Translations under genes and position numbers: made by a program
The notes under the pieces: generated by a model
What the model saw: only the letters and a program-made list of their open reading frames with translations
What the model was told of the DNA's origin: nothing
Databases searched by the model: none
Source: Trichoplax adhaerens
Lineage: Eukaryota > Animalia > Placozoa
Length of the DNA: 64,000 bases
Direction of reading: 5' to 3'
Assembly (NCBI RefSeq): GCF_000150275.1
Contig: NW_002060945.1
Coordinates: 2,875,172-2,939,171, forward strand
Shown here: positions 15,790-61,733 of the stretch, one piece after another
Numbering within the stretch: the stretch's first letter is position 1
How the letters are laid out: every line of letters begins with the position of its first letter

Positions 15790-16374
15790 TTATTGACTAG
15801 ATGTATTATGGCCTTCCTTTAATATGTCCTCTAAATGTTTAATATAACGGATAGCGGCACGTAGTGTTTCTACCTTTGATAATCGTTTTTGGTTGAATTT
15901 TCGTGGTAAATGATCTCTTAGTTTGGCATAGCCTTCATTGACGTGACGAACACGAATTCGTTCCCGTTCATTTCTTTTATGAATAAACGAGGGTTCTGAA
16001 TTAAAGTCTAGGCAAGGCGGAAAAGGGATAACATTCATCGACCGACTAGTAGATAATGAAGAATGGTGTTCGATATCTTGCTGATGAATTGTAGATGTCA
16101 CTTGACTTGAACTAAAATTTATAGAATTAGCACTAGCACTAGCTGTTACAGTTATTGCTTGCGTGGGGGTATGATTATTTGTCGATTGATGAGAATGAGA
16201 ATGTTGTTGAGAATAATTTGCTGTTGTTGCTTGAATTGGCAGGGATACCTTAGTCGTGTTATAATCGTTTCCATTAGGACTAGAACTTCTATTAGCACTA
16301 TAATCACTAGTATGTTGCTGAAGGGAAGGCTGATGACGATCGAAGCTCATTGCGAAAGAAGAAGTAATAGCCAT
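15790..16374 (-). CDS. ASCb: Achaete-scute family bHLH transcription factor, ASCb (ASCL3/4/5-like), 194 aa
   Basis: EPSFIHKRNERERIRVRHVNEGYAKLRDHLP...KRLSKVETLRAAIRYIKHL carries the ASCb-diagnostic EPxFIxKRNERER, VNEGY, HLP and KRLSKVETLRAAI motifs; Ser/Thr/Gln/His-rich N-terminus. Confidence 0.95.
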   Translation of the reverse strand: MAITSSFAMSFDRHQPSLQQHTSDYSANRSSSPNGNDYNTTKVSLPIQATTANYSQQHSHSHQSTNNHTPTQAITVTASASANSINFSSSQVTSTIHQQDIEHHSSLSTSRSMNVIPFPPCLDFNSEPSFIHKRNERERIRVRHVNEGYAKLRDHLPRKFNQKRLSKVETLRAAIRYIKHLEDILKEGHNTSSQ

Positions 16375-19300
16375 TCGATAGTATTGAAATGATTATGAAT
16401 AGAAAAATTCTGGATTAGGGATAATAAATAGCGATTCGAAGACGAGATTCACCTAAAAAGTCGAAATAGGTAATAACGCAATTGATTAACTATACGCTAA
16501 ATACTAAATTCTAAACTATACATCACGTTCACTTTCTAGAATTTTAAGTATCTATAAACAGAGAAGAATGCTCGTTTATTGTATGCTTCCGTAATATAAT
16601 GGTAACATTTAACCAAAATAATCAATAGTAAGTTTTAAAATAATATCGCACTATCTAAAGCATGTCATTTTGAGCTTATTTTTAGAATACTAAATTAAAT
16701 ATATGCTTAATATTGACCTAAAAGTATTTAAAATTAATAAATTTTTGAATATTTGGTGCCACTTTTCCACATAGAATAATGAATAATTACTGCAATTACA
16801 TTGGAGAGTAGAGTGTGTGCTGAGTCAAGTACGACGTATGAATGCGGATTTTTACGTCTATGTTACAGCAGTAACATTCTACTGGTGAACACTAATTTAC
16901 CCATTTCTTTTTCTCTAATAACATAGAAAATATTTCGGTCTCAACTCTCTTGAAATAACAAATTACTAGATAAGCTGATTATCTCTTTATGAATTCATTT
17001 TATATCAGGTATCAGATATACCACAAATTAAATGTAAACTTTTTGAGTTATCAATCGCATTCATCGCCATAAGAGGAACCAAGAAATATTACGGAATACC
17101 ATAATTTATTTTCAATACAGATTACTTATAAGTAGGGCGAATATTAACACTCGAGTAACGATATTCTTTTCTGGCAACATTAAGTAGGGTAATATTCTTG
17201 ATCGATACTGAAAGATATCTTACTAAGCCTGACATATAACTCTAAGCTTAAAATCGTTTCATTGTCAAAAAGCAGCAAGTTAATTAGTTATTGAATCACC
17301 GAATCACCCATGGAGAAAATGACGAGAAAAATTAGATCGATAAGACGCCTTATCTTTTCATGAGTCAAACTTTATATTATTATATTAAATGGCAACTAAA
17401 ATATCAAATTATTTCAGCCCTATAACTTCAATTACAGAATTATGGTATAAAATTTTGAAGTTTTTGATAACAAAATTTAAAATATTTGCGAAATTCAAGA
17501 TAAAATAACAAAGTAAATTTAATATAAATTATCATTGATTATAATATTGTCGAGAATAAGGTCTTAATGCATTAAAAATTTAGATCTGTAATCTTACAAG
17601 GATTCATATTGGGTTATATGATAACTAGGCTATTTGCATGATATATTTAAAATTCTAACCGAGGATGAATTTATCACGTAATAAAGGTAATACATGTAGA
17701 ACTGAAATAAAATTTTTCTTTTATAGTATTGTACCCTGACTATAATTGCTGATAAATATTGTCGATTTTGACTAGTCTTATTAAACTTTTCAACATGTGT
17801 GACTTACTTGATAGAGGTAGCTTTCCAAATAGGTGATAGAAAGCCAAGCTAACTAATTGATAGCGATGAATCGATCAATGGAGATCCAAGAAATAAAAAT
17901 TTTTGATTGCAGTTCACGTTGTCACCGGTATTTGAATCCTGGATGTAATATGTCTTTTTTAGCATAAAAGAATTAATCGGCTACGCTAATCAATTTTAAA
18001 CAATTTACTAAGATACCGTGTCTGATAGATTACCAGTCAATATTGAATAGCTGGCACGATAATTGTTTGACTACTGATTTAACGAATGCTTCTATTTTCA
18101 ACCTGTATTTATATCCTGCCACCCGCCATACAAACCATCTCGAGTAATGATTTGGTATACTCCTAGTGCGATAGCAACGCAAAACTATTATGGAACTGAC
18201 CTACTTACCGAAGTTGAAAGGACTTGTATTAATTTAGGGTGGGGATTATGGAAGATGAAGGAATAAAATATCGTATGGTAGACGTCACTTTTGAAGCCAA
18301 TAATATCGCACATCTTAAATCAATAATTAGAACAGAATGTCCATTAAATAAAATAAAAGAAAAGTTAAAACGTCTTCAATGATTTATGAATTAAAATGAT
18401 CTATTCTACTCATTCTATTATTCAAGACAGCAATTCTACTCTATTGATCAGCAATACACAGGTGTATCTAGATCATTTTTTAAAATTATATACTACCAAC
18501 CTTCCGTTGAAACAATACCAAGTTGAAAAATCTGATATTAAAAACCATGGATGATAATGATTTTATATTAATATGTTTTACAATCTTAGCTAGAGTTAAT
18601 CTTGAAAATATGGATAATATTGACAATTTTATTTCAAAGTTTTTTCATTATCTACTTAGAAAATGAGTTGATATCCCAGCTTAATGTACTATAAATTGGA
18701 TGAAATAAGCATTCTCATTTATTTAATATTAAAATAAATTGCAATTTACGTTTAGAATTACAGAATAGAATAATGATTCAAAGTCATCTACAAGCAAATA
18801 ATTCAAAATCATTATTTTTATTCTCCTCTTCCCTACAGTGCTATAGCTTTTATTGATTTAAGCCGGTTGTATTTCTAAAATGAATGATGGACAGATAGAT
18901 AAAATACAACGAATTAAGACAATTATCTTCCTTAAGCGGATATTACTAAGCTCAGCCAACTCATTGTGTTCAGATGTATTAATAAAAATGAAATGGCCCG
19001 TACGGTAGAGGATGTAGAAAGTAATCAAGAACAGGTCAAATCTGTTACATCCGATGAATTGGATATTAGCATAATAATAGCAAGATAGTTTTATAAAAGT
19101 AACAGTAGCTCTTGCAGCTTTCATCGACAGCTCTATTCTCATATTTAGTACTGTTAAAAGATATAGATGTCAATTTCATCACGTCTTACAGGTATAGCCA
19201 CAATACTTGGTGCCGATATCTTTTAAGAATGTAAATACAGACTATATATGGCGTCTAATCAGATATCCCATAGATACCCACATTAAACAAACGTAAACTT

Positions 19301-22300
19301 AATTTACTGTTATTTATGAATTAATTCAGATAATCATTAAATAATGATTAAATAGTATTTAAAAATACTTTTTTATCTATCCTGTAACTCATATCTTATA
19401 AGCGCGCTTTTTGTTATCCACACACATCAACTACCGTCTATCTACCGTATAATGATGGCTTATTATCTTAGCACAACGCATTATCAATCGTAAAATATTT
19501 ATCTGGCATCGTCAATAGAATTCTGTATCTGAATTTTGGACATATTTCGACTAATTATGAATCTATCTTGTATTTTGTGGAGTGTAGTATTTTCTTTATC
19601 TTGTAAGATTGATGTACAGTAGTTTACCGTCGTGTTGCAGACGTATCCAACTGTGTGTAGACATAATTAGATGGACTTTGAAATGTAAACTCAATGTTGA
19701 ATTAAACTTGGATCCAGTTACCATTTCATTGTAACAGAAATTGATTAAAGAAAAAAAATTTAGTCTAATTATGCATTGATTACACGTCGACGGTTCGTTT
19801 ACTAAATAAACATTAAAAAAACGTTCAATACTAGCCAAATGGATTTTATTGTTATCACGGGTGTCCAAATTAGATAACAATAGTTCAAGTAACGGCATGA
19901 CGAAATGATATCTAATAATGACATTGATAGTTCTTAATCTACTTTCACCTTGACTTACATCGTTAAAAGTTGTTCATAAATCAATAAGAGCATCGACGAA
20001 AATTATTCATCTACTCCTTTGCATTTGCTAAGAACCCTGACTAATTTACTGACAATTACTAGAATCTTACAACTAATAAGCTTACATATTGAAACGTACT
20101 CATTATTAACAGATGTGACTTATTATCGACGATAATAATTTATTTCTAAGCTTTGAAAAGGAGCTAGACGAATCTGGTATATCCTACTCTTGGGACACAT
20201 TCAATCGCAAGATTATCTGCACCTTATACAACTAGTTTAAATTTTCAGCTAATTATTTTAAGTTAATTACGTAGGAAACGAAATGACTTAAAATAATATG
20301 CCCAATCACTCAAGAAACGGCATGCTTTAATAAACAAGTGCCAGTAAACTAATTTCTATTCATGGACTCTGTACTATATAAAGTCGATATCCAGGTCCTG
20401 TCCAAAGTTAAACAGATATTATAATTTAATAACTTATAATCTACTTTGTTAGCGCACCATTACGATTTATCAGCACTAATCCTAAAAGATACTTTTATCG
20501 ATAGAAAATTCTTTTGTCATCGAGTGCACCTTGTCCTGTTTTAATTTTAATATTCCTTTTGATCCTCGTAAATTTCTAATTCTATTCGCGAAAATGCCAA
20601 TTGAAGTAGAAAAGAATTAAATTTTAGCTTGATTAATATACAATAAAATAAGAAATTGAAGATGAATGTACCATGATCAAATTTACTTACAATTGACGTC
20701 AATAAATAATTCAATATTTGATGTACGAACTTTGCCATTTTTATCGCCATTGAATAACTATAATGACGATTTTGTTGACACAGCTTACACATCTTGCTAA
20801 AGTATAATAGTATCCACCTTTAATAAGTTAAATTAAATTTTTCTATTGTCTTGAATACATTGGCGTGGACAAGAAGTTTACTTTAGTTAAAACTGATGAT
20901 CAGGCAGACGGAACTTATATATCGCAACGTAGAAAATTAACTTCGTAGTGAATTACATTAGATAGCTTGTATATTTTAAAAACTATATTAGTGACACACA
21001 ACAGCCAAAAAATCTATATTGTAGAGAATTATGTTCGATTATTCTTACGTTGATGCTAGTAGGAACGTTACTATTCGATAAATGTGGTATGCAAGTTATA
21101 ATTTTGAAGCATCATAATATCCTCGACTAGCAATTCCTTTAAATTATATTATTACAGGTAGCCACAAGGCACAGTTTAGTGGTATACGTTAACCTGATAA
21201 ACTGTACCGGTAATAATATAACTACGTATTTTTTTCATAAAACATCGGCATGTCACATTTGAACAAGCCACAATAGTGCCCGTTTACGCGCACTTATCTA
21301 CAAGAAATAATTGAAAATTAATCATAACATCTATATAGTTTAACCTATATGCGAGGCATTCAGATTAAAAACTATCACCGGATTAAAAACTTCTATTTAA
21401 TCTTTATGCTACAGAATGGATACAGTAAGTCCAATATTTGATTGTTTTGAGAAATCTTTTTTCATTTCTACCAAGAGATATTTGGGAACTGAATTTTTTG
21501 CATCCGCTTATTCGTATATGATTTCCTTCAAATGATTGAATGATACTGAAGGCAATCAGTAACTGAGAAGTAACAATGAAAACTTATCAGACGACTACAG
21601 ATAAAAGTAATTTAATTAACCTATTAATGTCTCCTCGCCCATAAGTTCCTTTTATAATTAACATGATGGTAATCATGGTAAGTTAAATCAACGACGCAAT
21701 CTGTGTCCATACATATACAAATTATTCAGGTTGACTTATTTGAAAAAAGTCTATTCTACATTGTCATGTAAATTACCTGATACAAATCGATCCTCGTCTA
21801 CTTTGATAGTCAGCGTTACTACAGTTGATTTTAAAAATTTTATCCTTGGTGATGTATTAATTGTCTATTTTAACTACTAATAACATTGATTTAGTATACT
21901 TTGACTAACGACAATTATGCATACTGATGATCGTGGCCATACTTGAATTAAGATAAATGTATTCCAATAATGATTACTTAATCTTGTAGAGCCATGTTGA
22001 ACTTTAAGACTGATATCAATATCGAATTGAACACATTTAAATTAAAATAATTTCGAGTATATCGCATGTATTACATCATGTCATCGCAGAATCGGTTTCA
22101 GTGGTAATTTCTACATCTGGAATGCGGAATCTCATCGTTTGACGTCAATTTTTGAGCAAATAGAACATTTGTAGTCATACAAGATACTCCTTCTAAAATT
22201 ATGGTAATTTTTGTAACAGAATTACTTAGAGTGCGGTATATTAAACCTAAATCTTTTATAATCTCATGTACAACATATACATTGCAACTTAAATTATACT

Positions 22301-24169
22301 AGCATAATCTAATCTATTATTCAGTAATTCCTGTGTCAACTAATATTAAATGCCGCTACTTAATCTAATCATGCATGTTTCAGAGTGCGTTCATTATTTT
22401 ATCAATAAAATTACCTAAGCGACCTTTAAGAGAATTTATTTGCAAAAAGAATGGCCGTGATCATCGCATTGCTATTATTAGCTCAGTCTCACTGCAATAA
22501 TTATCTTAATCTTATTATGGTAATACCAAATACGAAAGTAGAACTACATGTCTAATTTTATGTGAAACTAGCATTTATAGTCAAGTACTTAGATATTCAT
22601 CTGTGCAATCCGATTATTGGTGATCTCACATTAAACAATACTTAAAAATTCGTGGTTTAAATAGATAAACGGCACAATTTGATCATGATAGCTTTAATTC
22701 ACTCAGAATGTCCAGTTGTATCAGTTTAGTTACAAGGGACTCCATCGAATTTCCTCCATTCATGATCGAATATTCGTATACTGTAGATCAATCAGCAAAG
22801 GAAAACTAATACATTATCAGGATTTCCAATAATATCTTTTTAAACATTTGCTTGCGTTAAAGACAGAAACAAATTACTCGGAATTCACCGTCATTGACAA
22901 TGCCTATAGAGAATATAGTCAGCTTTAAAATCTATAGACGATGCTATAATTTTGATATTTCTGCTTTATTTAAATCCATGCTCCAGTAATACTACATATT
23001 ATTGTTAATACATTTATGAAAGAAACACTATCGCCGTTTCATTCAAACCATTTGCAGAAGCACTGTCGGTATATAAAGAGGAATTCAATTCTAAAACTTC
23101 AAGTATAAATTGTCCGTAATGCTACAGAATTACTTACGCAAACAAAAGAATTAGTTTTCCTAAGATAAATATCGGAGGTCATTGTCATACGCCTTCCTTC
23201 GTTATAATAAGCTTTAAAATTTTGGAGTTCCCCTTATTTCCAATCTGGACAACAATACTGTTAGCTTGCTAATTAATTTCTATTTAAAATCCTAATTTGA
23301 GGCTGTGCAAGTGTAGAATCCGATTACTAGCAATAAGCCTCAAGAGTAGAATAGTACAACAGCTATTCCTACCCGAGGTATGATAATTGAGGAACCAATA
23401 TCGATCAAGAGTACTGCTATTAAATGGATATTACATCGTGCTATTTATAACTTTGTATCATTCCTGTTATGATTTGAATTTATTCTTTCTATTAACACTA
23501 AATAATTGTATCGTTTCATCAATACTGTTAAATAGTTAGAGTTTAAATAGAAGAATTTAATTTAATGTGTAACCAGAATATTACTCAATCACTTTGCATA
23601 CGTATAAGAAATGAATTACTATCGTCGTAAATCTTTAACATTATTGTACTATTATCAGAAGCATCGTATATTATTCTAATTTCACAAATTACTTAGATGT
23701 CATCGTTTACACACGATACCTTTCATCATAATTTTCACTTTCAATTTATAAATAGAGATCAGATAATTTTGTAAATACCTATGTGCCTGCTGCTAGATCA
23801 CAAAATAAATTTGAATGGTTCATCTTCTTTCTATACAAAATGTAAAGAATCAATAAATGATCTTAAAAATATCAATCCTCAAACTTAATCTATCAACTTA
23901 AAATATTATATATTAATTTAGATTACATTATTATCAAGGCATGTTGCATTTCAAATCCGATAATCAAAATTTATTTTAGAACAAAGAAATTGACTTTAAC
24001 CTTAGCGTAAACTCTAATAAGTAAAAGCATGGATATTACAGTAACTAAAGTCAGTAATCGTTAAATTATTACTTCATACAGTGCAGGCATATCGACTATT
24101 CGTTTGCCCATTCTAGCTCCATTTTATTCATTTAGGGCCTTTGGGCTAAACCTAAGCCACCAGCCTCTT

Positions 24170-24312
24170 TCGTCCGTCCTAAATCTGTCCGTACTGCCCG
24201 TTAGCAGAGATTGACGTCATCAGCCGAATGCGACGTCATTAATGGCGTCATAGAAAAATCAGGATTGCATCTACGACTGCGCAGTAAGCAAAACAGGTGT
24301 GCTGATTCCCAC
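24170..24312. promoter_or_regulatory. CpG-enriched island with clustered CRE/ATF sites; candidate promoter or enhancer
   Basis: TGACGTCA 24212-24219, CGACGTCA 24231-24238, TGGCGTCA 24243-24250, palindrome ACTGCGCAGT 24276-24285 and E-box CAGGTG 24294-24299, in a locally GC-richer patch. Confidence 0.55.
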
Positions 24313-27300
24313 TATTGTTGACAATCCTCTTGCAGAAGTTAAAGGAGAACTTGAGCTAAAGCGTTAACTACTAAAAATTTTTAGCAGTCCTTGGCTGAGG
24401 GGCAAGAAGATTTCCATACACGGATAGCAAAATTGCAACACCTTGCCGGAAAATCAGCTCTTATACCGTGTAATCATTTCTTTCTCCATGCATCTATATA
24501 GGAAACTGTGGTATGGCATGGGAACGAAGCTTGTGTTATTTTTATAACATCGATATGCTAATAGTATTTGCAATGAATATAGCATTGGCTAATGGAATAT
24601 ATTAAAAAAAATCTACCCACCATAGACATACAATTTCTGCCCTTGCAATAGTTTCTATTACCTAGTATCTTATTAAAATCGCATATACTGTAGGCAATAA
24701 CTTATACGAGAGGTATATGGCTGCAAGCAATTCTTATAAAATGCAATATACTATTTAGCTATAGACTTCTGTATGCTCATAAAGCACATCAGGAAGGTAA
24801 AATTTCATTTCTTGTGCAACTAAATCCATTCATGATGAGTTTACTAAATTGACTGCTATGCACGATTATTAAGGGAGCTCTTACCAAGTTTCACATTGTT
24901 GTAGTATTAAACTGTATGTAGCTAACAGCAGTGTTTGATCATGCTTGTTCATATCTAAATTAAATATTTCAATGATTTCGTCGTATACAAAAGATTTGCT
25001 TAAAAACGTCATCAAAACATTGTCCAAAAAATATCGAAAGCTATAATCAAATTTCTAACCTAAACTTTAATTTTAATTCGCATCTCAAAGTATGCGTGTA
25101 CATGCGGTACTGTATAAAGCACCACAATAAAAACATCACAAATTCGTATTAAATAAGTTCCTTTACTTAGCTATATAACATATTAATTCCTGAAAGAATT
25201 GATTTTCATGAAATGAACATATCTTTTGAATAAGCTGATATGGAAAACAAAGATTTAATAATCTTCGCTGTAGGATATACCAATTTAAAACTAAAATCAG
25301 GTTCATTAAGCTACAAAAATTACTTCCAATACTAGCCAATAGTCATATTATCACAGAGATAACATACAAGTTTTCCACACTTCATTTACAAAAATAATCA
25401 ATAAAAGCAAAATGTTTGTTGTTGACGCCGCACAATCACGGAATAATGCTTGCTGAAATTCGTGTTTATTTGTGCCACTCTGTGTGATGTTAGCAGCAAC
25501 CCATAGTTCAGGATGATAGGTTCATTATATTACAACAATCTTAAACGATCGAGGATACTATTACGGTTCAATTTTAGGGGATTTTGAGCTTCTATTCCGA
25601 TGGCTGGCATTTCTAACATTCAGAAAATCTATATAAATGAAGATTATGTAAGTAGTAGCTCATATCATAGCTTATGAGAATTTCTGCTAATATAGTTTAA
25701 AGTGCAATTTTTCGAAATATAACAAGCACATTATGTATCCATAGGAATTATTCAATCAATTGCTACAGACATTGATCGTAGATATAATTTATATGCATAA
25801 TTAATTCAAGCACACTAAGATCTTGCAGATTTAGTTATACTAATACACTATAATGAGTAAAAAAATTAGGATGTTAATTAATAAACTTGTAAAAATATTG
25901 TATTATATTTATATGTATCAATTCTCAGTGATCACATAAATTCTTGCCCATGTGTACTACATAAAACTGTAAACTTTGAAATAATCGACATTACGAAATA
26001 TTAGATGGGACTATTACTCATATCGCCTTATGATAGTCTAAAATACAAGATATTAAAATTTCACTCTAATACAATATATAAATAAGCATTGTATTATATC
26101 CATTATAAATTCGAGAATATTTTAAGATATTACTTTAAGGCTCATTTTCTGTAGTTTAATAACAGTATATAGTTCTCTTAATAATTCTGCTCTCAATGTC
26201 AAATTGTTATAACCGTTTAATAGTCTATTGTTATTACTGATCAATCCTCAAATTCTGCTTCAATATGATTCTTTCTGTTGTATTTTAAATCTGGTAGATA
26301 AGGCCTTCATAGTAGAGTTTCGTTTAATGTTTACGAAACGTTAGTTGTTTCACTGATCCGTTCTTGTTTCAATTCAATAATGGATTCTTTTTCTCTGATG
26401 TACGATTATTCAATATTGATCTCATATTAGTGCTGTTAATTATTGAATCCCAAAGATTAAATGCTATTTCGTTCTAAAATTTCAAATCTAGCTGCTGTAA
26501 TACTTGCTTAATCTCACACAATATTCACCAAGCCTGATTAGAAAATTCTCAATCATCAAGATATTGTATTCAAAATTAATGGGTGTGCCACGTTGCATAC
26601 CTTATTCCTTCCATTGTTATCGTAAGTACAAATAGCGGAGAATTTCAAAAATTTTATTGTTATTTAGAAACTTTACAAATTATTAATTTTTCCCTTTTTT
26701 ACAACTCAAATTCTCTAAACGCGAGCTTTACCTTACGCTAGGAATGTTATTAAAAGGCCGCATTACATTATTTTGGTTGTTTCGCCAGTTACATTTACGA
26801 TATATAAACTATACACAATCCGTTATATTTATTCCTTACCGATTGAGATTTGTAATACACAATCTTTGATATTTACAAATGATTTACTACGCATTGTTGA
26901 CCTCTGGAAAAAATCATGATTTATTAACTACGATTAATACACTGTATTATACTTTAGTTTAAATAAATATATGAACTATACAAGTGATAAACCAATCACG
27001 AAATTCTAAGATTTGTAGAAAATTATAATTTTATTAGATCTAGATACAAAAACGTACTACGAACAGTTCTACTCTAACCGGATAATACTATTGGAAAGAC
27101 TATTAGAAAGTACTGCTGAATTTCTAAAATTCACTGCTTATATACTTTTTATTACTTCTGCACCTATAATCAGCATAGCTGCATCCTAACTTATTCTTAC
27201 AATTATTTAGGCTATATTTACATAATTAGCAAGATACGAATATACTACGGCGGATCATTTGCAATGTATTATGGTAACAGCCTTAGTATTTGTGCAGCTA

Positions 27301-28321
27301 TGTTTTCCAACTAGCCACAATACGATGAGTCATCCATACCATGGCGTTAGCGATTAAGCAACGGACTGTTGAGCTAGTAATATATGACCGTTACGCATCT
27401 ATTTCTGATTCTACCGTCAACAAAGACTCAATACCTTGTTGTATATGGTCATCTGTACTCTAACATAGAATCTTCATTTGCTGTCTATGGTTATGAGTTT
27501 ATAACTTGAGTATAGCCTATAATAAACATAGTTAGCCACACTATCGTAATTTGTACTAAATATGGCTAATAATCTGCAATCTAACACTGAATTTCGTTAC
27601 AACAAGTAAACTGTATTTACGCAAATTTTCAATTTAGTCTTTATTTGATCAAATTCGATATTGGAAATTGATACACATTTTGCAGTAGATATGTCCGCTG
27701 AGGCATGCAATGTTGCTCTATACTGATATTCAGTCAAACTGTTCAAATGTTAAGATTGTTAGTTCGATGCAAATTATTACATTACTACTGAATTTTGCAT
27801 TATTTAAATGCCTATAAACCGTACTATTCCCGTCTGCAAAGGGACAGTATGCTAAGCTAGAAAAATTAAACTGTTCATCAACATTTAACAAATCAATAAC
27901 TCCTCAGACATTTATACTGACACGTAATATATTTATATAAAAATATGCTATAACTTCACGTAAACACATGGAAAAAATAATAGCAGCAATTTTAGGCTTA
28001 CTATACTTATGTACTATCATAACAGAAAATTAACCCATGAATTAATGTATTGAATATTAATCTTGTTAAATATATATCAAAATAATATCTATGACATTAA
28101 TAATAACGAATCATATTATGAACAACTCAACGTTAACCTTGTAAGATCTCTTTACTTCACTTATATTTAATCAATTTGCCAGAATTAGCAAAACACTATC
28201 TTATGTCATAACAAGAATGGCCTATATAGATATAGCCTTCAAGTTCAAAAGGTTTATTAAACCACTATGCAAATCACGTTCTGGGAAATCCGTCGTAAAT
28301 CACTTCTCCTCCATCGTAAGA

Positions 28322-48735: not shown

Positions 48736-48875
48736 GTACGACGAATGAACTCGTTTAGCCACTACAATATAAATTATCACCTCCTGCGACTGGCAAATTT
48801 TGGGTATTAGACGATATTAAAGAAAGAAGACGACCATCTATTCAAGTCAGAGGATCAATCTATCAGTAATAATCT

Positions 48876-49427: not shown

Positions 49428-51630
49428 CAATATAATTCGGCTTGCAGTTAAAGAAGTAGCGTGTAAGCTTGGTTTTATTACGTCAATACGCTAAAGTCAG
49501 TTATGTAATCCATACTCGTAAAATATTTATCTCAATCAATTAATTTTAACTCTCATCGACTACCTACATGACAGTACGTGTATAATCTTAATAGATTAAT
49601 CCTATCCTTGCTATACTGAATATATGTACTCTGTCATAATGACACCAATCCCACCATATTTATTTTAATTTAAAAAAAATTAGATTAATGTATTTAGTCG
49701 AAATAAATCTAACTAGTTTACGTTAATGGATGATGTTACTTGCGTTTCTACTTAAAGATACCAAATTAATCTTCGGTTTGATATCGTATAGAATTGTATA
49801 ATTATTAACAAGAAGCCCCAATCAATTCATATCCTTTCATCCAAGTGAATAACTAGCGGTCTAACCTTCAATTATTCAACTCATACTTTTCGATCAAATT
49901 ATAGTTACCTTAACTCTGTAAATCCCAACATGATTAATTAATACGCTATTCAACAAAGCTTTTTACAATTTAATATGTCACGATCTCTTAATGCTTATAG
50001 CCAAATTTTTAGCTAATAAAGTACTCTATTTGCTTCGAAATCAGGGTTTAAGTTAAGGAAATTCTAGGTAATTTAGTACTAAACATATGGATTTCAATGA
50101 GCAAAATCAAGCCAATTTCATATCATATCAAAACTTGCCTGTACTGCATTATCAATCACTAATCTTATCTAACACTTAATAGTTTACTATAGAATACGGT
50201 ATACATAAATATCAATGACAGACGGTAAGACGAAATTATCTACCAAGGTTAATTAAGAACTTCATTTCCATTTTAATATTACTGCAGTATCTAATAAGTT
50301 AATATCACCGTAGCATAACGCGTACATACAAAATTTGGTTAAAAAAATGTGTTTCATCTATAGCTAATTTCAATCTTTAAAGTTAATATCCTTAGAGATT
50401 AATTATAACAATTAAAAACAGTATTACTGTTATTTATACGTTCATCATTCTACATCATACAAATGATGTTTTTTTTCTAAATTATCTACCAATTAATTTG
50501 AACGTATTAGTGCAACATGTAAAATGGTATAATTTCTCACCTTGTTACATGATATGGAATCAATCTGTAAATATACTCCAGTAGCTATGCTACTAATATC
50601 TAATTTATCTGCTACTAACTGTTTTGTTAATAAACGATGTTCAAAGACTGTTATAGTTCCAGGTAATGCAAGAGATAACCTCTAAGCTCAATAAAATTAA
50701 AATCAATTCACAGCTTAATCTCATAAATTTTCGTATATCTGAAATAAACACTGTTCACAGTCGAATAAGAGTAAGTTTTAAATGGGCTTAAATCGATGTA
50801 GAAGATTAGCTTCATTACTATTCTTCTAAATTAATGATTTCTATTACATTAACAATATAGGAACAAACTGTAATGAACTTTCATAAATCTAAATCAGGAA
50901 AGAAGTGTGTGATTTTTATATTTTTAATTCATAATTAATATTATTTAGGGAATCTTTCGCATAATAACACGTTGAAAAAAGTTTTATAAAATTGAATCTC
51001 TACATAAAATAAAAATTATCCTTTTCAAATTTATTAATTTCAGAGCACTATTGGCATTAGGATATATTCCTATACACCTTACAAACTTCAATCATTGTTA
51101 AGTGCTAAAGTTATTTTATTTCTTCCATATTTACCGATATTTATACTATTATTACTATAAATTAGGAGCACTGACATTATAAAATAAAATAAAAGTGTAA
51201 GCCCTACAAATTTTATTTGAACAAAACAGTAATATATGGCAAAAAAATTTCACCATCTTCCAAATTTAATTACTAATGATACATCGCCCATGTTTGATAA
51301 GTCATACTCGTTAAATTAACTTAACTTAGTATTTCAGATTAATTGTGATCGCTATTCTACCATATTTAACCATCTTATAGTATCTATAAATCAGACATCC
51401 ATCCTATATAGTATTAAGAAATTTCGGCGTTATAAATATATCACTATTAAGCTCTCAATCTTAACAAGTGAGTATCACTTTACATCCTTAAATTGAACGC
51501 CTGGTTTAAATAAATACTATTTTTGTATAAACTTCATAATGAATGGTTTCAAATGGTCACTATCTACAGAATTTAGATTATCTAGATTCTACGACAGCTT
51601 TAAAATCGTGAGTTACAATCTTATACCCTT

Positions 51631-52520
51631 TGTAGTAGCTTCAGCTAATTACAGAAGTAATTGAAGCAAGGTAGCATTAAGAATTAAAATAATTTACTAA
51701 GCTTATAAAGTAGTTTGATGATTGCTGAAGATGAAACAGTGTACTTATACTATTCGTTTTACGTGTGTATAAGGCCACAGTAGTCGGCTATATAAGGTGA
51801 TGTTTTTGTGTAATATTGTCACGGTACGAACTACCGTGAAGAAATAGCTATCTAAATTTGGTTAATATAATATAGTGATAATATATTACAACTAGTTACT
51901 TACAATAGGAATTACTCTAATTATAAATGTGTTACAGTAAATTTAATGCTGTGCTGCAATGTGCTCTGAAATGATTCTGTGAATGGACATATTGTAGTCT
52001 GACTGTGAAAAATTTGTTAGTAGATGTTCTCACCTAAGTATTTTTATATGATGACTCATGAATGTTAGCTACTGTAGAAGGGTATATAAGCCCGTCAGAT
52101 AGTTGAATAAAGTAGTTCTCAATTATCTAGTTGAGTTTAACGTAGAATCAAAGGCGTCTAAATTCTTGTGAGGTAGTTAAGGGATACCGAATCCCGGAGA
52201 CTATGGTAATTTAGAGATTTGTTTTACGTTATCCTTGTCACGAAGCTGGTTTGTGACAAATATCTTAATACAACTGTCAGATAATATGGAATTGTTATCA
52301 TGGAGACGAAGTTGGTTATCCGGTTTATTTTAGCTGCTTTCGACTGTGAGGGAAGAAAAGTGGATTCTTCTCCTGAAGTTTTTTTATTGATAAACGATAC
52401 TTAGCTTGAACACGGTGTTTACCTGATCTTGTGTCGTGTTAGAAATTTGCTCAATTTTAATGACTCAGATTTGAGTTAGACGATTGTGAACCTTAGGGGT
52501 TGTAAAACCCAAACACTACA
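51631..52520 (+). mobile_element. Outer solo LTR (about 443 bp after removing the nested element)
   Basis: TGTAGT...ACTACA perfect 6-bp inverted termini; perfect TSD CCCTT (51626-51630 / 52521-52525); TATATAAG at 51789. Confidence 0.85.
51817..52258 (+). mobile_element. Inner (nested) solo LTR (442 bp)
   Basis: TGTCAC...GTGACA termini; perfect TSD AATAT (51812-51816 / 52259-52263); TATATAAG 52083-52090 and AATAAA 52106-52111. Confidence 0.85.
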
Positions 52521-54957
52521 CCCTTAAATAAAGGAATTTTTCATACTAGATTTAGATGACTCAATACTATCGCTATTCTCATTAAAAGCAATGATAATTA
52601 TTTAATGCCACCTAAATTCAATAAAAGATCTAAGAGTACCTAATCCTTTTGACTTCGAAAATGATAATCAAGTCCCTATGCTAAATAAATACAGTAAAGC
52701 AGAATAAGGATATTTCCGTGTATCCTTTTATTTACCTTTGCAAAGTCTTCTTTTGGTAAGGTATATGTAATAAAGTCGAGCCAATTAAAGTATAATCCAT
52801 TAATAATATTTATTAGAAATAGCAATCTATTGCTATACTAATTTCAACTACACCAACATATAGAAAGCTGAAAAAATTATATACTCTCCCTTATTTCAGA
52901 CATGATTTGATTGCGATAGGTGTCCTTTCACCATGTATCGTGTTAGATTTATTCGTCAGAAGTATTTATATTTCTAACTAAAAGAGTTGATTTAATTGAC
53001 TCAATTGATAATTTACAAGTTCATATTTAGTTTCTAATAACCTAGCAATACTTTTACTGTACCATAAACTCTTTACTGAAGAGTAAGGAATATATAAATA
53101 GCAAATCATTGGTTAATTATTTTACTTCTACCAGTAGTGAGCTCTAATTGTGTTAAATACAATGCGATAACATCATCCAGTGGCTATCTATCATGCCTTA
53201 CAATATATGTAGACTTCTTATTACAACGCAAAGTATCTTCTTTTGAAATATAATAACAAGACTGCGGCTGCTTTCCCTAGCTATACTAATTTCCTGATAT
53301 AATGTATCTTTACTTTCAATTACAAATCAACGTTAATCTTAGAATTGGCATAATGAATAAACCCTTATTTTCGCGTAAATAATTTCTTAAATAATAATGG
53401 TAGGCCGCAAATTATAACCATCATTACTAATAATATAACCTCAAAAGAATCATAACCTTACTCTGCAAGAAAACGATATACGCGTACTTAATATCATTAC
53501 ATCCTTCTACTTATCTTTAAGAAGAATCAATATCGTTTAGTCATCGTGTCTGCATCAGAAGGATCTTTTTAACGATCATCAATAGATAACATTTGAATAA
53601 TATAAAAGATAAAGAAGCTATAAACATAGTTCAAAAGTAAGTTACGACGATATGAGAGTTGATTAAATTACTTAAATTATTATGCCATATTTCTTAAAAT
53701 TTAAGTAATTTTCACCCTCTGAGTAATATCATTTATTAACTACTGCCGTAACATGTTAGTATGTTAAAATTTGAAAGATTTGCTGCTAATATATCCATAA
53801 TCTGTATATGATCAGTTACACGGACAATGAACCAATACGATAGTTTAATCTATCAATTTTAGCTTTACATGAATATGATAATGTTACTGTTGGCTCAATT
53901 ACCATGCACAAAATGAAGTAAATCGTAGCTTTATATATCACAGGTTCACATATACAATCCAAAGTTTAACGTATTTATTATAATATTCACATGATTATGG
54001 TAATCTTATTGTTGACTAAGTTATCATGTACTGTTTATATTACAAGTAGACTAGAGATTGATTGCATTTGTGTCAGCATGAATTTACCTTAACGATGGTC
54101 CATGAATAATTGCAATACGGTGAGTCTACGAAACCTCATTCTTATATATAGAAATAATAAAATCTGATTTATTATTAACTCAATTAACTGATATTGATCT
54201 TCTAGCTATCTTAAGGTGATTAGCTTCCTTATACAGCAATTTAACCAAAAGATTTTTTATCCATATCACCGTTAAATATTTTTGGACGAGTTGCCATCAT
54301 TATTTCCAATATTATAATGTTCTCTTGCAGTATAGTGTAAAATTGCATCATTATATTAAAAATTACTTTTAGTGGAGTGTTCAGAAATGTAATCATAACA
54401 GTCTTATAGTATCAATAAATATACCCTTACTCTTAGCTACGTAACATTCAAAAAGCAAGGTGAGATCTGTTACGACGTAAAAGTTATTATATATGGTATT
54501 AATCATGTAATAAATTGATGAGAATAACATTCGAATAATAATTATTATAATACAATCTGTCGTAACAACACCAAAGCTTCAGTTAAGATAATACTCGTCG
54601 TCAGCAAAGGTAACATAATCAAGCATTAATGGACAAGACCCACCTGTAAATGATATATTGGTCCGGATTCAATATTCTAATAATTCAAATTCTGCGAAAT
54701 AATGTTATGAAATTTTATAAGAGTACTCGCTAAGCCCTATATACACAATGGCCTGAGAAAATTCTTTGAATATATAAAGCAAAATATTTCATGCAAGAGC
54801 ATAAAGTAACAAAGAAAACAACGACAAGAACTTATCAAACAACTATTGTACCATCTACTCTATATTGTTGGCTAACTATTTCATCTTACTGAATGACCAT
54901 GTAAAGAAGGCTTTTGAGTGTAAAAAAAAAAAGGATAATGAATTCACTAATTATTTA

Positions 54958-57900
54958 GGGTTAAAGTCCATATCTGACTGAATAAGCAGTAACGTTACCG
55001 CTTCTCCAAAATTTGTGATGTTTTAAAATTAATTGCTTCGTAATTCTAAATCTGATATTTCATGTATTGCTTTCAGGAATGAAAATTGCCTTGAACTTAT
55101 TAATCCAGGGTTAAATTCCACACTTACAGAATACGCCACAATATGATGACAATTTTAAATGCCTTTACGTTTAACTTTAATTTCACCATATTTACCGATA
55201 CTTTCTAACTAAAAATTTTACGATTTTAGAGATAGAGTTTCCAAACGATATACTATACGCTTAATTGTGCTAAGCCTAACATTGAATATGTCTAAATGGC
55301 ATTACTAAAGTACAACCATAGCTCCTATCACGAAGTGAATTCCGTTTAACATTTGATCTATATCACGGTGACGTTTTAGAATCGGATGAGTAGTTACCAT
55401 GATGTTTAACTACAGAGAAATGTCGTAATTAATCTAGCGTGACAATGTGAAAGCACGACTTAACGACATATTTACGAGTATATCACTCAAGAAGTGATTC
55501 TAATTGCTAACCCTCTCGTGAACTAAAATTGTCATTGATCATGATTCTTTACAGCAGAATTAAGTTAGCGATTATGTAGCCCGGATGCAGAAAATGCAAA
55601 CAATGTAACAGGATGAGTCTGTAGGTAAATATCTACGTAATTAAAGTCCATCTTTAGCTCTTAATCTTGCCATCAAGCAAAATCTGTTTGATACTTAGTG
55701 ACTGCGATAAACCGTAGTTATAAATTAATCTAGCTATCAGGGAATCTCTATAATGTTATCTAGTGAAATATATAATTTTACTTATATAATGTATTAGGCA
55801 CTTATACTACTAGAGTTCAACTTTCAAATCTAACCTTATTAAACATTAAATCAGCTTAATATTCGTTATACACACAGTAATGGCTAGGTATTGGGTCGTT
55901 CTCTGTAATTATTATAAAATTCGAATATGATAACTAAGGACAAAGGTCCATTATAACATTATCAACAGTAAGATAGAAAAATCGGTATAGCCGAATCGAA
56001 CTCAATTTTATGCTTCCACATATTTCCAATATTAGGTTCTGATACAGAAAATATAGTATAAAATAATCCAGTATGGTGATTCTAAAGTATTAAATATGTA
56101 CAACATGAAAATCAAGTCCTAGTTCCTAATTTTATCAAAAATCAATATTTATGATATCCAACTGTTATTATGACAGAATGAAAGACAAATAATATCACTA
56201 TCATATTTGAATTCACTGATTAGATCAAAGTCCATTTTAACGCTCTCACCATGATTAAAATATGCTGTTATACCTAGATGTGATCACCTTTTTAAAATAG
56301 TAGAATTGTGCTTTCATGCACTTTCAACATCAGGTCTGGGAGATTGAAAACATAATTAATTAATTCGTCTGGTTGATTTTAAAGGTTTAGCAAATATTTG
56401 CATCACTATAATTTTAACGTTGGCTTACAAACTTTGCATAAATCAAAGCCGGTGCTAAATCAAACATTATTGCTGCCTGTGAGAGTTATATATTAACTTT
56501 AGTTATCGCAAGATCTCATTGCAAGAAAGATTAAGCGTATAACTACGAATAAAGGTTAAAGTCCGTTTTAATCTCATCAGTATAACTATGAAACAGCTCA
56601 GCTGGCCAATTTATACCCACCTTTTGGCTGTATGCGTATACTGTCGAAGGCCAAATTTCAAAACTTTAATATTTCAAAGTCCAAAGGTTATAGTCCAGCT
56701 ATTACAAATATGATTACTATCTAGGATTAATCCACTATATTGCTCTATAATTTCATATTAAAACTGACAAATCAATCGAAATTTGTTGGATTTAGAAGAA
56801 TTATTAATACTAGAAAGATAGCAGCTGATTTTAATTCAAGATCAAATTGATTTTATAAATTGAGGAAACAAACTTTCAAGGATGCAGTTAAATATATTGA
56901 AATCAGAAAGTTTAGCTGATCAAATATGATTATCCATGTGTAAGAATAATTAATTAGTGAGCAAATATTAGTCTATATCATATTGAAATTCTGATAAATT
57001 AAGAGGATCAAAGTCCAAATCGAAATCATTGTTTGTCTGGAGTATAATTCTAAAGTTAAAGCTTACTTTCATTTATAGTTCCTACCAAGATACTAATTCG
57101 CCTTTCTGCTTGGGTCCAAAGTCCACGAGAGAATAATGAGCTAAAAGACTGAGATTTCTGTCTCAATTATTCTTATATACTTGTATATCTCGGCCAAAAT
57201 AACATGGAAGTAATCTGTAATCGATATCGTCAAAGCGACAATAACACATTGTTATTTCGTAGCCATTACATAGATTAGTACCCACGTAATAACGGCGTGC
57301 TATGTCGTTCCTTTAATTGGAACCAGATTGACTAGATAGTCATGCAATGACGCATTCATTGAAGGAATTATCTCGACTTTGACATCAAAGTTCAAAGTAC
57401 AAAGTAATCAATTTGAATAGCACAACATTCTTGTAAGATCACCTTGAATGAAAATTATACAATCTACTCCGTCTTTACGTTACGTAATTAAAATATTTCA
57501 ACAACAAATTTATAATTAGAATATTACACAGTTCAATATTTTAGTGTCACGTAGATGATGCGTAACTCATGATCCTATGTTTACAGAACTGTACAGTTAA
57601 ACGGCTAAATCAATCACCTTATTTTACAGATAAATAAATAATCAGGATATGGCACAAATATCTGTTGGAAGACACGATAGATAAAGGTATACAATATAAT
57701 AAATCAGAAATGATGTATTTCTACTGAATTTACAGAGTTGTACTTAAATGGATATCAACACAGTCTTATGGTTTTAATGATATTAGACAACTTAAAATGA
57801 TAAAATATCCACCGCAAAGTTAAAATAAACACGTTACATAGCATAATGAATCAAAATTATATTTTCTTACTCGTATGCCTTCGCAATAAATCAATAAAAG

Positions 57901-59030
57901 CTTTGTGAATATAAATAGTTTTCTACAATACATATTCCTGCTATCAAAACAATAGTGAATCATGATTATATTTTCTGATCAAGTTTCAGTAGTCATCAAA
58001 ACACGTTGCCTCTATAATATGTAGCGAAAGACTTTAATAGATATTTGGTTGGAATTTTAGCCCATCCATCTATATTCATCAAAAATGATCAATAGGAAGT
58101 TCTATAGACATTTAGATCAATTCCGTCCATAGTTTTCAAGTGTCAGTGAAATCAATACCAGCACTGGTTTAATTTTTTCTTAAATTTAATAAATAACAAT
58201 AATACAGTAATTGGAACGTAATTAGCTAATTATAATCAACAATCGTCCGTGAGAAAGTCCAAAGTTTGATATTTGTCGTCATCCCTTCTAACTAGATAAA
58301 AATCGAAATAAAAAGTTATAATTAGACGATGTCCTAACGGTCATTATGGTTGTTGATTATCTGCTGAGATAAGAAGCATAATATTACGAAAAAAGGTAAT
58401 AGACAGGCCATAAAAGATAAAAATGTTTCGGAAACTTTGTACATCATTGGCAAAAACAATTCGTAGATGGCATCTTTTATTGATAATTAATTAATCACAT
58501 AGTCGGTGAATGTCGTTAAAATGAATCTATCTTTGAAATACTTATAATTTATTCCGGCAGCACGTCCAAACTGATTGATAAAACTATATCATATTATGTC
58601 ATTGTACTGTGGTTCCTAAAAATCAACAATCGAATATCATAATAACTTAATTTAAAATTTAGCATTTCACATTTATCAAATCAAGTAAAATAAAGCAGAG
58701 CTTTACTTTATTCTGTTTTGCATAAGGTGTGTGCTAATAATTGCCCTTTATTGCTAAACCAATGTTGATGAAAGAAATCATTGGAACTATGCTACCTTTA
58801 TCTATATCCAATTGGTTTCAAAGAACTTTTGTTAATTGTAAATTAAATTTTATTTCACGTAAAGTTGAAATATTATTGTATTATGTAGTACAAAATCATT
58901 ATTTACGTTCGATTAATTCCTTAAAATTACACGTGAAAATTAAATAACAATTTGATTTACTTTTGAATATTAATTTTGAAAGATAATAAAACAACTACTG
59001 TTAGCTCACTTGAACTTTGTACTTTGTGTT
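54958..59030. promoter_or_regulatory. Homotypic cluster of HNF4-type nuclear-receptor DR1 sites between ASC genes 3 and 4
   Basis: GGGTTAAAGTCCA 54958, GGGTTAAATTCCA 55108, TTAAAGTCCA 55641, AGGACAAAGGTCCA 55937, AGATCAAAGTCCA 56222, AGGTTAAAGTCCG 56553, ATTTCAAAGTCCAAAGGTTATAGTCCA 56671, GGATCAAAGTCCA 57005, GGTCCAAAGTCCA 57113, CAAAGTTCAAAGTACAAAGT 57386, AGTCCAAAGTTTG 58256, TGAACTTTGTACTTTG 59011. Confidence 0.65.
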
Positions 59031-61229
59031 ACAACGGTAATAAGATTCAGTTGTTCGTATATTCAAAATATTCACATATTATATAACAATCGATAGCTCT
59101 ACTTTTTGACTACTGATTAGTATTGCTTTAAAAAATAATTTATAACCAACACAGTATCGCTTCTCAGTAATTACCTTTAAATATCAAATACCGTAATCAA
59201 TTATAATATCGCATATGAAATAGTTAAAATTTAACAATATATTCCAGTATTATTTCTACAATTATCTGTTAAGATAATCGAAACTATGTCTATCATGCAG
59301 TCTATTGGAGGAACACTACTATTACATATCACAATTAATAATGAAAATGATTTCATTTCATCACTTAAGTGAGGAATATCCCAGGAGATGTGTCGAATCG
59401 CGCGCACGAGACAAAATACTGTACATAAAACCTCGAATCAAGCTCATTTTGACTGGGAATAGCTACATTACGTCTACAATTTTTTATCGTCGCTCTTTCT
59501 TTATGGCTTATTAGGTGCCAAAAGTGTAAAAATACTATCTATATAAATTGTAATTAGCTTTTAGTACAAGTTTAGGACATGGCTACAGCTACTTTAATTT
59601 CTATTTGAAGATGCGAGCTATCTTTATCTCCAATAATATCATTTTAAATATTTCTACATCAGATCAAATCTATGGTATGTTGCTTACTAATATAAAATTT
59701 TATTTCCGAAAGCTGCTTGGTTAACTAAAAGAGTGATCAAGTTTCATTCGTAGGTTAATTAGTCAATGCCATCATATTAGGATGAGTTATACGATCTAAT
59801 TGTCATTATATAGTATTTTGCTGATGTATTTAAAAGTGGACTATAATTCAATAAAAGATGTAGTAATAGTGCTAAGAATGGATTCTATTAGTTAATAACA
59901 AAAAACCATAGTGTTTTAGTACAAATTCCATCGAGGCATTATGTTAATTAAGAAATAGAGAGCATGCTTACTATTTTTGTACGTTTGTACAATTATGCCT
60001 ACCTAGTCCCAAGTGCTAGTTAAGAATAAATTGAATAAACAGCCACTTACTATTTCACAATATTATGCCTTATGGGAGAACATATAAATAGCCAAAAGAT
60101 ATTTACTTGGCAAACGAAGGAAAGAGCTGATATAATATCGTATCTAATATGATCGATATTATCCGTAACTATATCATAGCAGTCGCGGAATGATAGTCCA
60201 CATCGATAAAAAATAAAATTATCTTTGTACCGTTATTTAATGCCAGTTAAACAGCCCATACTACACCTCCAGCCTAGAATATATCGAGATAGAATCTAGA
60301 CTAGCCTATTTTTAGCTTAGATAATTTAATTTTAAACCGACGACATTCATTTATTCATCAATGTCAATCATGCCTGATGTTCCAAAGTATTTCATGTTTT
60401 ACGTACTCCTACTTCACTTGTTAACCTATAGAAATATATAGTACTGTATATCCAATAAAATGCTCCCATAGACGGCTAACCTAAATTGTTAAATCCATCG
60501 CATGATTTTGATGCGTGCCAGTGGAAGTTAGCTAATTTGCGAAATGAATGAATGCTTCAACTATCTGATCACTGATGTATTCTGCTGGGAAATCAGTACG
60601 GTATTAAATCCACTATTGGTCAGATCCTTTCGTTTAGAAATCATTGATTTATTCCTAGACTCATCAACTATTCGTCTTGTAGTTTCGATTCTACTTTACA
60701 CCAGTCCGCAGTAAAAATCTTATCTGAAATCAAAACATCAAATCAATCAAAGTGTTGTGTTGTCTTAATACTATTTATTCATCATAATAAATGATAAAAA
60801 AGAATTCAAAAGTACGGCCATTTGATGACTCAAAAAATTGTTTAGATAAACAAATGAAATTATACACGAGCTTATCTAGCTAGCGATAACTGCAGCAATA
60901 GATATAATAGCATTAACCATATGTTACATAATTCTAATAAAAGAATTTCAAATCTCTACTAATTAAGATTAAAAATACTAAAATTATAATAAGCAGTAAA
61001 TCTAAAAGCAATGAAGTTCAAATTCTAGAATATGACAAATTAATTAGATTATTAAAAGTCAATGACCAGTTTCAAAGAGTTATTATTTTTACTTTCTGTT
61101 AACTTCATACTATTTAAATCGTAATAGCAAGAAATATTAGGTAATGGTCAATATTTAATTTAATCTTGTTATCTTAAATGACATTCAAAATCTAGTCAAA
61201 TCATATTCGACCGTATTTATAATAGAAAC

Positions 61230-61733
61230 TTAATTAGTGGCAGTATCGTCGGCTAGTAAATCCTTCAAGTGATGGATATAATCGATAGCCATACGTAGTG
61301 TCTGAGCTTTCGATAATTTTCTTCGTTTGCCGATCACAGGCACATGCTTTCTGAGTCGAGCAAACCCATCATTCACTCGCTCAACTCGTTTCCTTTCTCT
61401 TTCGTTTCTTCGTAAAGTTTTTACAATTTTCGCAGGATTTTCGTATAGTCCACTTACAGAATGTTCCTCGACGCAGTAATAGTTGCCATTTGTACAAATT
61501 CCTGGACTTGATGCGCCAGAACTGCAATAAGGATCACCCATAGCAGAACTTGAGCGGCTCGTACTTTCACTAAATTCCTCGACATCTTGGATATCTGAGT
61601 GGTAATAGCCATAACAGTTTTCGTTACTCTTCAGCGGCTGTTGATATGATAACGGAAACGATGGCATTACATGGGTTTGAACATGGAAGGCCGCACCTGA
61701 TTGATAATAATCGCTGCCGGTATGCGCCATCAT
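61230..61733 (-). CDS. Achaete-scute family bHLH transcription factor (divergent), about 167 aa
   Basis: TLRRNERERKRVERVNDGFARLRKHVPVIGKRRKLSKAQTLRMAIDYIHHLKDLL. First ATG at 61733 (the ORF track starts at TTG 61751); TATTTAAG TATA variant at 61869-61862. Confidence 0.95.
   Translation of the reverse strand: MMAHTGSDYYQSGAAFHVQTHVMPSFPLSYQQPLKSNENCYGYYHSDIQDVEEFSESTSRSSSAMGDPYCSSGASSPGICTNGNYYCVEEHSVSGLYENPAKIVKTLRRNERERKRVERVNDGFARLRKHVPVIGKRRKLSKAQTLRMAIDYIHHLKDLLADDTATN

Follow-up and report, generated by a model that had tools for sequence, protein, structure and literature searches.

A four-gene achaete-scute cluster kept across Placozoa, most likely the relic of an old tandem array

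In this work, we analysed a stretch of 64,000 nucleotides from the genome of the placozoan Trichoplax adhaerens (hereafter the window; positions 2875172-2939171 of contig C1412, in an assembly of 105,631,681 bases, 1414 contigs and approximately 30% GC), which harbors four genes encoding basic helix-loop-helix (bHLH) proteins of the achaete-scute (ASC) type. Five open reading frames (ORFs) of at least 100 amino acids (aa) are present in the window, and a bHLH domain is found in four of the five. These four genes, designated g1 to g4, are arranged in the orientation -,+,+,-, each with its coding sequence (CDS) in a single exon and a Pfam HLH match (E 5e-18 to 2e-20), and are separated by 19.5 kb (g1-g2), 12.4 kb (g2-g3) and 11.8 kb (g3-g4). 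The arrangement reported in a first-pass annotation of this DNA, namely four divergent ASC bHLH genes in that orientation and 12-20 kb apart, is therefore confirmed by the ORFs, the Pfam matches and the measured gaps. The features of the locus are the following, in window coordinates:

1..64000, no strand: gene-poor domain around the cluster (flank ORFs; Pfam, Rfam, tRNA and tandem-repeat scans)
15790..16374, minus strand: g1, ASCb-type, 194 aa, whole CDS in one exon (ORF; Pfam HLH E 5e-18; bHLH at 15805-15993)
17806..18020, minus strand: exon of the g1 5' untranslated region (5'UTR), spliced to 16450 (936-nt contig, run X7)
35975..36508, plus strand: g2, 177 aa from the ATG at 35975 (Pfam HLH; bHLH at 36263-36451; full ORF 35891-36508)
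47855..47990, no strand: conserved non-coding block, about 0.9 kb upstream of the g3 ATG (identity to a divergent placozoan)
48876..49427, plus strand: g3, 183 aa (Pfam HLH; bHLH at 49224-49412)
61230..61733, minus strand: g4, 166-167 aa (Pfam HLH; bHLH at 61239-61427; full ORF 61230-61751)

The four proteins share the signature RNERERxRV...LSKxxTLRxAIxYI and 25 invariant bHLH positions, including R7, N8, E9, R10, E11, R12, R14 and V15 in the basic region and L38, S39, K40, T43, L44, R45, A47, I48, Y50 and I51 in helix 2, and their N-terminal halves are unalignable. From their residues, the basic regions appear to retain the E-box contacts of group-A proteins (RRNERERNRV type). The ATG of g2 was placed at 35975 because the ortholog P0130 (177 aa) begins with the same MNP(L/M)SV residues, and that of g4 lies at 61733 or 61730. 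The best database matches of the cluster proteins carry achaete-scute homolog names, and their counterparts in Trichoplax sp. H2 are 99-100% identical: the H2 assembly GCA_003344405.1 encodes a protein identical to g1, and g3 displays 99% identity to P0121 ('Achaete-scute-like protein 5 [Trichoplax sp. H2]'). The database protein P0124 matches g4 at 100% over 166 aa. In the transcription factor (TF) table of Najle et al. (2023; Table S4, PMC10580291), g1 is TriadT7436, named 'ASCL3/4/5', g2 and g3 are included in one orthogroup, 'like ASCL1-5', and g4 is 'like ASCL3/4/5'. When g4 was searched against the whole genome, the next matches were the other three genes of the window (E 1e-11 to 1e-14), followed at 1e-8 by unrelated bHLHs; because of this drop, g1-g4 constitute the whole ASC complement of the Trichoplax adhaerens genome.

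Transcription was assessed with reads aligned over 6 kb of the window, using run X7, which yielded the spliced contig, and three runs recorded as RNA; most other candidate 'RNA' runs were DNA-like (84-90% of words). The X7 contig (936 nt) spans 15730-16450, including the entire g1 CDS, and then joins 17806-18020, across an intron of 1355 nt (16451-17805) with GT..AG borders on the minus strand (CT..AC as read on the plus strand). The three RNA-seq runs likewise provided contigs that cover the 5' portion of the g1 CDS. Thus, as the X7 contig establishes, g1 is transcribed, with a spliced 5'UTR exon and an uninterrupted CDS. The four genes had been described in the first-pass annotation as intronless, which holds for the coding sequences (g1 and g3 are single-exon CDSs of unchanged length in the H2 annotation, and the RNA contig agrees for g1) but not for the g1 gene as a whole, whose 5'UTR is split. 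Upstream of g1, weak, low-depth unspliced contigs (X7, X15) were observed at 19829-21346, a single-copy stretch, overlying ORFs 19599-19973 and 20550-20819, neither of which has a Pfam match; this signal could correspond to upstream transcription, enhancer RNA or DNA carry-over.

No further gene was found among these four. None of the intergenic ORFs of the window matched a Pfam family, including those at 11133-11411, 18861-19169, 19599-19973, 38311-38607 and 39401-39670; the stretch at 18800-20900 is single-copy in the genome; scans for Rfam families, tRNAs and tandem repeats found none within the window; and in the H2 annotation no gene is called within 10 kb on either side of g1 or g3. To the left, a gene encoding Ig, FN3 and IgGFc-binding domains ends 10.2 kb from the window, and a pair of TspO genes begins 1.4 kb to its right. 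With these flanks and the empty intergenic scans, g1-g4 stand alone in approximately 75 kb of an otherwise compact genome. The locus is thus an array of tandem paralogs without intervening genes, as expected of a complex resembling the Drosophila achaete-scute complex (AS-C), and unrelated genes interspersed among the four, which the first-pass annotation had named as evidence against its reading, were not found; its statement that no intact gene lies between them agrees with the Pfam, Rfam, tRNA and H2 results and with the consecutive gene identifiers described below, with the weak contigs at 19.8-21.3 kb as a caveat.

The cluster is kept across the whole phylum Placozoa. In Table S4 of Najle et al. 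(PMC10580291), the four genes carry consecutive identifiers in Hoilungia (Hhon_g00681-g00684) and Cladtertia (HoiH23_000957-000960), and three consecutive ones in Trichoplax sp. H2 (003870-003872), whose contig stops before g1. For each of g1-g4, a 1:1 ortholog was identified in a divergent placozoan: P0001 for g1 (66% identity overall, 94% in the bHLH), P0130 for g2 (97% in the bHLH), P0122 and P0123 for g3 (65-69% overall, 95-97% in the bHLH) and P0125 for g4 (49% overall, 70% in the bHLH). Therefore, the duplications that gave rise to the cluster predate the living placozoan lineages, a point further illustrated by the bHLH identities, which are 46-59% among the paralogs of the cluster versus 94-97% for the placozoan orthologs of g1-g3. 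The old duplications and unalignable N-termini noted in the first-pass annotation are in agreement with these comparisons. g4 evolves fastest of the four, and its LSKV motif carries Ala where Val is usual. The C-terminal tail of g2 (36452-36505) is almost unchanged in P0130 despite a diverged N-terminal half, and may represent a functional motif outside the bHLH. Outside the coding regions, the block at 47855-47990, single-copy in the genome, displays 80% identity over 137 nt to a contig of a divergent placozoan (L031:2098-2234), and the alignment around the g3 CDS to the same contig reaches about 410 nt upstream of the ATG; the block may be a 5'UTR exon, a promoter or an enhancer.

In order to place the four genes within the ASC family, an exhaustive profile search was carried out, which returned 12,401 relatives; the best 150 of these were pooled with 120 matches of an earlier search, the bHLH was cut out and the set was thinned. 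Word-index protein searches with g3 and g4 had yielded matches in placozoans only, an effect of the word filter that has no bearing on novelty. The main tree comprises 78 rows and 63 columns (LG+C20+F+G4), is rooted on seven other Trichoplax group-A bHLH domains, and was built without fly sequences and without a named ASCc reference. Groups were named via cluster records and the supplements of Simionato et al. (2007): group 3 contains Hydra11 (CnASH type), Nem17 (NvashA type), a Saccoglossus and a scyphozoan sequence, group 4 corresponds to Nem13 and group 5 to Nem23, and a large bilaterian group of 28 rows includes spider, annelid and lungfish 'achaete-scute homolog 1a' sequences. The equation of group 3 with 'ASCc' is our own reading of the 2007 sequences together with Bao et al. 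(2017). Multi-domain, artefact-like or PTF1A-type genes were left out (P0126, which has four bHLH stretches, and P0127, P0128, P0131, P0132 and P0141). P0126, a predicted protein of 606 aa, consists of four repeated partial ASC-like bHLH units with near-identical Q/P/S-rich spacers, and reflects either a genuine repeat protein or the fusion of a tandem array into one gene model.

All four genes fall within an ASC clade separated from the seven other Trichoplax group-A bHLHs with support 100/100. g1 and its ortholog P0001 lie inside the ASCb clade (86/78), beside a coral ASCb gene (P0005; 100/84 and 96/86, both starred), and g1 bears the ASCb signature VNEGYA.LR.HLP and KRLSKVETLRAAI.YIKHL, with 70-75% bHLH identity to vertebrate and cnidarian ASCb proteins; g1 is thus an ASCb ortholog. 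In turn, g2, g3 and g4 are placed outside ASCb, in a non-ASCb clade (86/80), a split that received 99 in the Shimodaira-Hasegawa-like approximate likelihood ratio test (SH-aLRT) in a larger unrooted quick tree; by their sequences they are assigned to the ASCa/ASCc side of the family's main division, and all three are outside the bilaterian ASCa group of 28 rows (81/72). Within this side, g4 groups with Acropora and Nem23-type genes (97/79). g2 is sister to group 3 with weak support (84/44); it shares HVPTD...KLSKVKTLR with the NvashA/CnASH genes and most of the group 3 signature (RRRV(Q/K).VNDGF...) but has RRNERER where group 3 has RRNARER, and it is 63-68% identical to cnidarian and hemichordate members of that group, so that it looks most like the NvashA/CnASH, or ASCc-type, genes. 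g3 is unplaced within the non-ASCb clade of the main tree, is paired with Nem13-type genes in the quick tree (84), and shows up to 67% identity to an Exaiptasia/Acropora group. The first-pass annotation had recognized both ASCb and ASCa-like members: the ASCb assignment is borne out for g1, and g2-g4 are on the ASCa side, although none lies inside bilaterian ASCa and 'ASCa-like' is a loose term for them.

Approximately unbiased (AU) tests were applied to alternative groupings. A single clade of g1-g4 was rejected (ΔlnL, the log-likelihood difference, 42.7; p=0.018), a clade of g2, g3 and g4 was not (ΔlnL 5.2, p=0.108), and neither was a grouping of g3 with the Nem13 type (ΔlnL 2.9, p=0.418). 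Since the AU test rejects one clade of four and g1 nests in ASCb, the split between ASCb and the rest of the family is, on this phylogeny, older than placozoans. Consistently, bHLH identity to cnidarian or bilaterian genes reaches 75% for g1, 68% for g2 and 67% for g3, above the 46-59% seen between members of the cluster.

A related linkage was found in corals. In three Acropora-type assemblies, an ASCb gene (P0010) lies 7 kb from an ASCa-side gene of the Nem13 type (P0269), in convergent orientation. The bHLH of P0010 is identical to a Stylophora 'achaete-scute homolog 3-like', and P0269 is named in Acropora cervicornis. The coordinates of the pair are:

L018:10001-10495, plus strand, and L018:17424-17888, minus strand: coral ASCb/Nem13-type pair; also on L024, L025 and L026

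This pair supports an old linkage between ASCb and the ASCa side. At a coral or anemone locus of the NvashA type (L030), no second HLH gene was found within 10 kb. More generally, the cnidarian set (Nem13, Nem17/NvashA-type, Nem23 and Nem27, with Hydra CnASH-type) resembles the placozoan one in comprising one ASCb gene and three ASCa-side lineages, with pairings of g1 with the Nem27 type (starred support), g4 with the Nem23 type (97/79) and g2 with the Nem17 type (84/44). Nevertheless, 1:1 orthology of g2-g4 with cnidarian genes is tentative (AU p=0.108 for the placozoan-only clade versus p=0.418 for g3 with Nem13), and cnidarians use their ash genes in true neurogenesis.

Linkage among ASC genes is also known in bilaterians. 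In vertebrates, the pairs ASCL1/ASCL4 and ASCL2/ASCL3 represent ASCa and ASCb genes in loose linkage on the same chromosome, and human ASCL1 and ASCL2 are adjoined by genes encoding aromatic amino acid hydroxylases (AAAH; PAH and TH). Like these pairs, the placozoan cluster combines ASCa-side genes and an ASCb gene on one chromosome; however, the vertebrate partners are separated by megabases with numerous intervening genes and have AAAH neighbours, features that are absent from the placozoan cluster. A PAH/TH-ASCL synteny at the cluster was ruled out, the Trichoplax AAAH gene being on contig C1388. In lophotrochozoans, ASCa and ASCc are linked, 'likely a very old linkage' according to Bao et al. 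(2017; PMC5381572), who found non-bilaterian ASC genes 'hard to classify'. As in the placozoan cluster, different ASC subfamilies are physically joined there, but the lophotrochozoan linkage is bilaterian and concerns ASCa and ASCc only, whereas the placozoan array is non-bilaterian, adds ASCb and holds every ASC gene of the genome.

Among the closest parallels is the Drosophila AS-C (ac, sc, l(1)sc and ase). Both complexes consist of four ASC bHLH genes with uninterrupted CDSs, in mixed orientation and with long intergenic DNA over tens of kb, and both are related to precursor selection under Notch/Delta, which on the placozoan side comes from the literature and concerns g3. In contrast, the Drosophila genes are all ASCa, the product of insect-specific duplications (4 ASCa and 0 ASCb; PMC5381572, Table 1), whereas the placozoan cluster mixes ASCb with the ASCa/ASCc side, and arose independently of the insect complex. 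Enhancers shared among genes have been shown in the Drosophila AS-C and may be supposed for the placozoan cluster, where the only hints of co-regulation are the long, conserved intergenic spacing and a conserved block upstream of g3.

Regarding function, in Table S3D of Najle et al. (PMC10580291) the orthogroup OG_7241 (Tadh_wf_g3088, Hhon_g00683, HoiH23_000959) appears among the TF markers of peptidergic progenitors, with expression common to Nematostella and Hydra neural progenitors and mouse neuronal precursors. The same marker list includes the E-protein TCF3/4/12 (TriadT8076) as well as Delta and Sox genes, and these progenitors are Delta/Notch-positive and increase under Notch inhibitors (PMC10580291). 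From the gene order, and from the lack of a match to g3 among older T. adhaerens protein models, we infer that g3 corresponds to Tadh_wf_g3088 and Hhon_g00683. The E-protein was taken from Table S4 of the same study; the locus L027, also considered, encodes another bHLH type. The four proteins are class-II bHLH factors whose basic region is intact, and would act at E-boxes by forming heterodimers with the single placozoan E-protein. g3 would be expressed in Delta/Notch-positive progenitors that give rise to peptide-secreting cells, a proneural-like role without neurons, and g1, g2 and g4 may have comparable roles. The first-pass suggestion of a complex specifying secretory or peptidergic cell types matches these published single-cell data with respect to g3.

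Taken together, the complete ASC set of Trichoplax is organized in one four-gene cluster within a desert of approximately 75 kb, kept throughout the phylum. Given that it combines two ancient lineages, ASCb (g1) and the ASCa/ASCc side (g2, g3 and g4), it most likely represents what is left of the tandem array from which the ASC subfamilies first diverged; both the ancestral linkage and a cis-regulation shared by g1-g4 would belong to this explanation. Several observations weigh against it. The tree is based on 63 columns, with deep nodes at only 81-86% bootstrap support, and the AU test accommodates a placozoan-only origin of g2, g3 and g4 (p=0.108), so that the ancestral array may have had two genes. 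In the Nematostella v1 assembly, ASCb (Nem27, scaffold_588), Nem13 (scaffold_123), Nem17 and Nem23 are found on four different scaffolds; therefore cnidarians do not keep these genes tightly linked as a rule, and the coral pair may have formed secondarily. The sole AAAH (PAH/TH) gene of Trichoplax (PF00351) is not near the cluster but on contig C1388. As for the proneural-like role, the identification of g3 with Tadh_wf_g3088 depends on gene order, and the cell-type placement covers g3, not g1, g2 or g4. The ancestral-type array proposed in the first-pass annotation thus gains from the 7-kb coral pair, which supports old linkage, while the AU tests (p=0.108 and p=0.418) accommodate a g2-g4 split on either side of the placozoan divergence and the Nematostella scaffolds speak against the array.

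Among the alternatives, the one that comes nearest to the evidence assumes an ancestral pair, ASCb plus one gene of ASCa/ASCc type, with g2, g3 and g4 as tandem duplicates of the placozoan stem that diverged fast, their likeness to cnidarian genes being noise from a short alignment. Joining g2, g3 and g4 costs 5.2 lnL units (p=0.108), the support of g2 with group 3 is weak (84/44), the g2 bHLH shares 57-59% identity with g3 and g4 versus 46% with g1, and Najle et al. place g2 and g3 in one orthogroup. Yet the free tree puts g4 with the Nem23 type (97/79) and g2 with the Nem17 type, and the quick tree puts g3 with the Nem13 type (84); g2 and g3 share 57% identity with one another but reach 68% and 67%, respectively, with cnidarian genes, and HVPTD...KLSKVKTLR is common to g2 and the NvashA/CnASH group. 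We regard this two-gene origin as quite possible, if short of probable. In its most far-reaching form, the relic-array interpretation would make the cluster the sole intact surviving copy of a four-gene proto-AS-C of the placozoan/cnidarian/bilaterian ancestor, with ASCb and Nem13-, Nem17/NvashA (ASCc)- and Nem23-type members, of which corals keep one pair and lophotrochozoans the ASCa-ASCc link, and whose array and shared regulatory desert predated neurons and first diversified peptide-secreting cell types; this extended version is speculative and rather unlikely.

A gathering of four dispersed genes in the placozoan stem, with the coral ASCb/Nem13-type pair formed alike and independently, would explain the four Nematostella scaffolds and the mixed orientation (-,+,+,-), which is not head-to-tail. 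However, gene families usually originate by tandem duplication, an ASCb gene beside a non-ASCb ASC gene occurs in two phyla, the lophotrochozoan ASCa-ASCc linkage points to an old array, and chance is unlikely to have assembled the full set of four paralogs in a single desert free of other genes; we consider this scenario improbable. Finally, the genes could be young Trichoplax paralogs, uninformative on the origin of the ASC subfamilies. The tandem arrangement by itself would fit such a recent amplification, and Simionato et al. read the bHLH clusters of Nematostella in this manner; nonetheless, it is already refuted by the rejection of one clade of four (p=0.018), by paralog bHLH identities of 46-59% versus 94-97% for the placozoan orthologs of g1-g3, and by the presence of these four genes, in unchanged order, in Hoilungia and Cladtertia. 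A recent species-specific clade was likewise what the first-pass annotation had specified as contradicting its interpretation, and both the AU test and the 1:1 orthologs speak against one.

The surroundings of the cluster comprise genes of other types. The two TspO/MBR (translocator protein) genes, 1.4 and 4.6 kb to the right of the window, are on opposite strands (L003:1371-1793, plus; L003:4624-5031, minus), and about 18 kb to the right lies an exon with C2H2 zinc fingers (L007:8143-8718, minus), the first resembling both Zap1 and the Zic/Gli type, from a TF of developmental type. On the left, from about 24 to 10 kb away, the minus strand is occupied by a large multi-exon gene (L001, L005, L002) with many Ig/FN3-like exons and an IgGFc-binding exon (PF17517, E 9e-41). 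The GC-richer left end of the window (1-4000) was considered as a gene and discarded, its ORFs being without Pfam match and 1940-2700 being a dispersed repeat; this segment is made up of families of short repeats (about 90-200 nt) that occur more than 100 times in the genome, and repeat-derived ORFs like those found there recur about 22-31 kb to the right of the window.

The genes themselves were already annotated, in the TF table of Najle et al. (2023) and in the NCBI annotation of H2, and g3 was already tied to peptidergic progenitors, which together with a phylogeny resting on a 63-residue domain limits the significance of our results. In a full-text literature search, no paper was found on the cluster or its ASCb plus ASCa/ASCc make-up, nor on the coral ASCb/ASCa-side pair; the Trichoplax bHLH survey of Gyoja (2014) was outside the coverage of this search. 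Achaete-scute genes are core proneural factors, and the origin of their subfamilies is not settled for non-bilaterians. The cluster and the coral pair provide a concrete locus for asking whether the ASC subfamilies split by tandem duplication before the divergence of placozoans, cnidarians and bilaterians, and likewise whether neurons were preceded by a common regulatory landscape for selecting precursor cells. In an animal without neurons, an ancient tandem array of neuron-making genes would thus survive.

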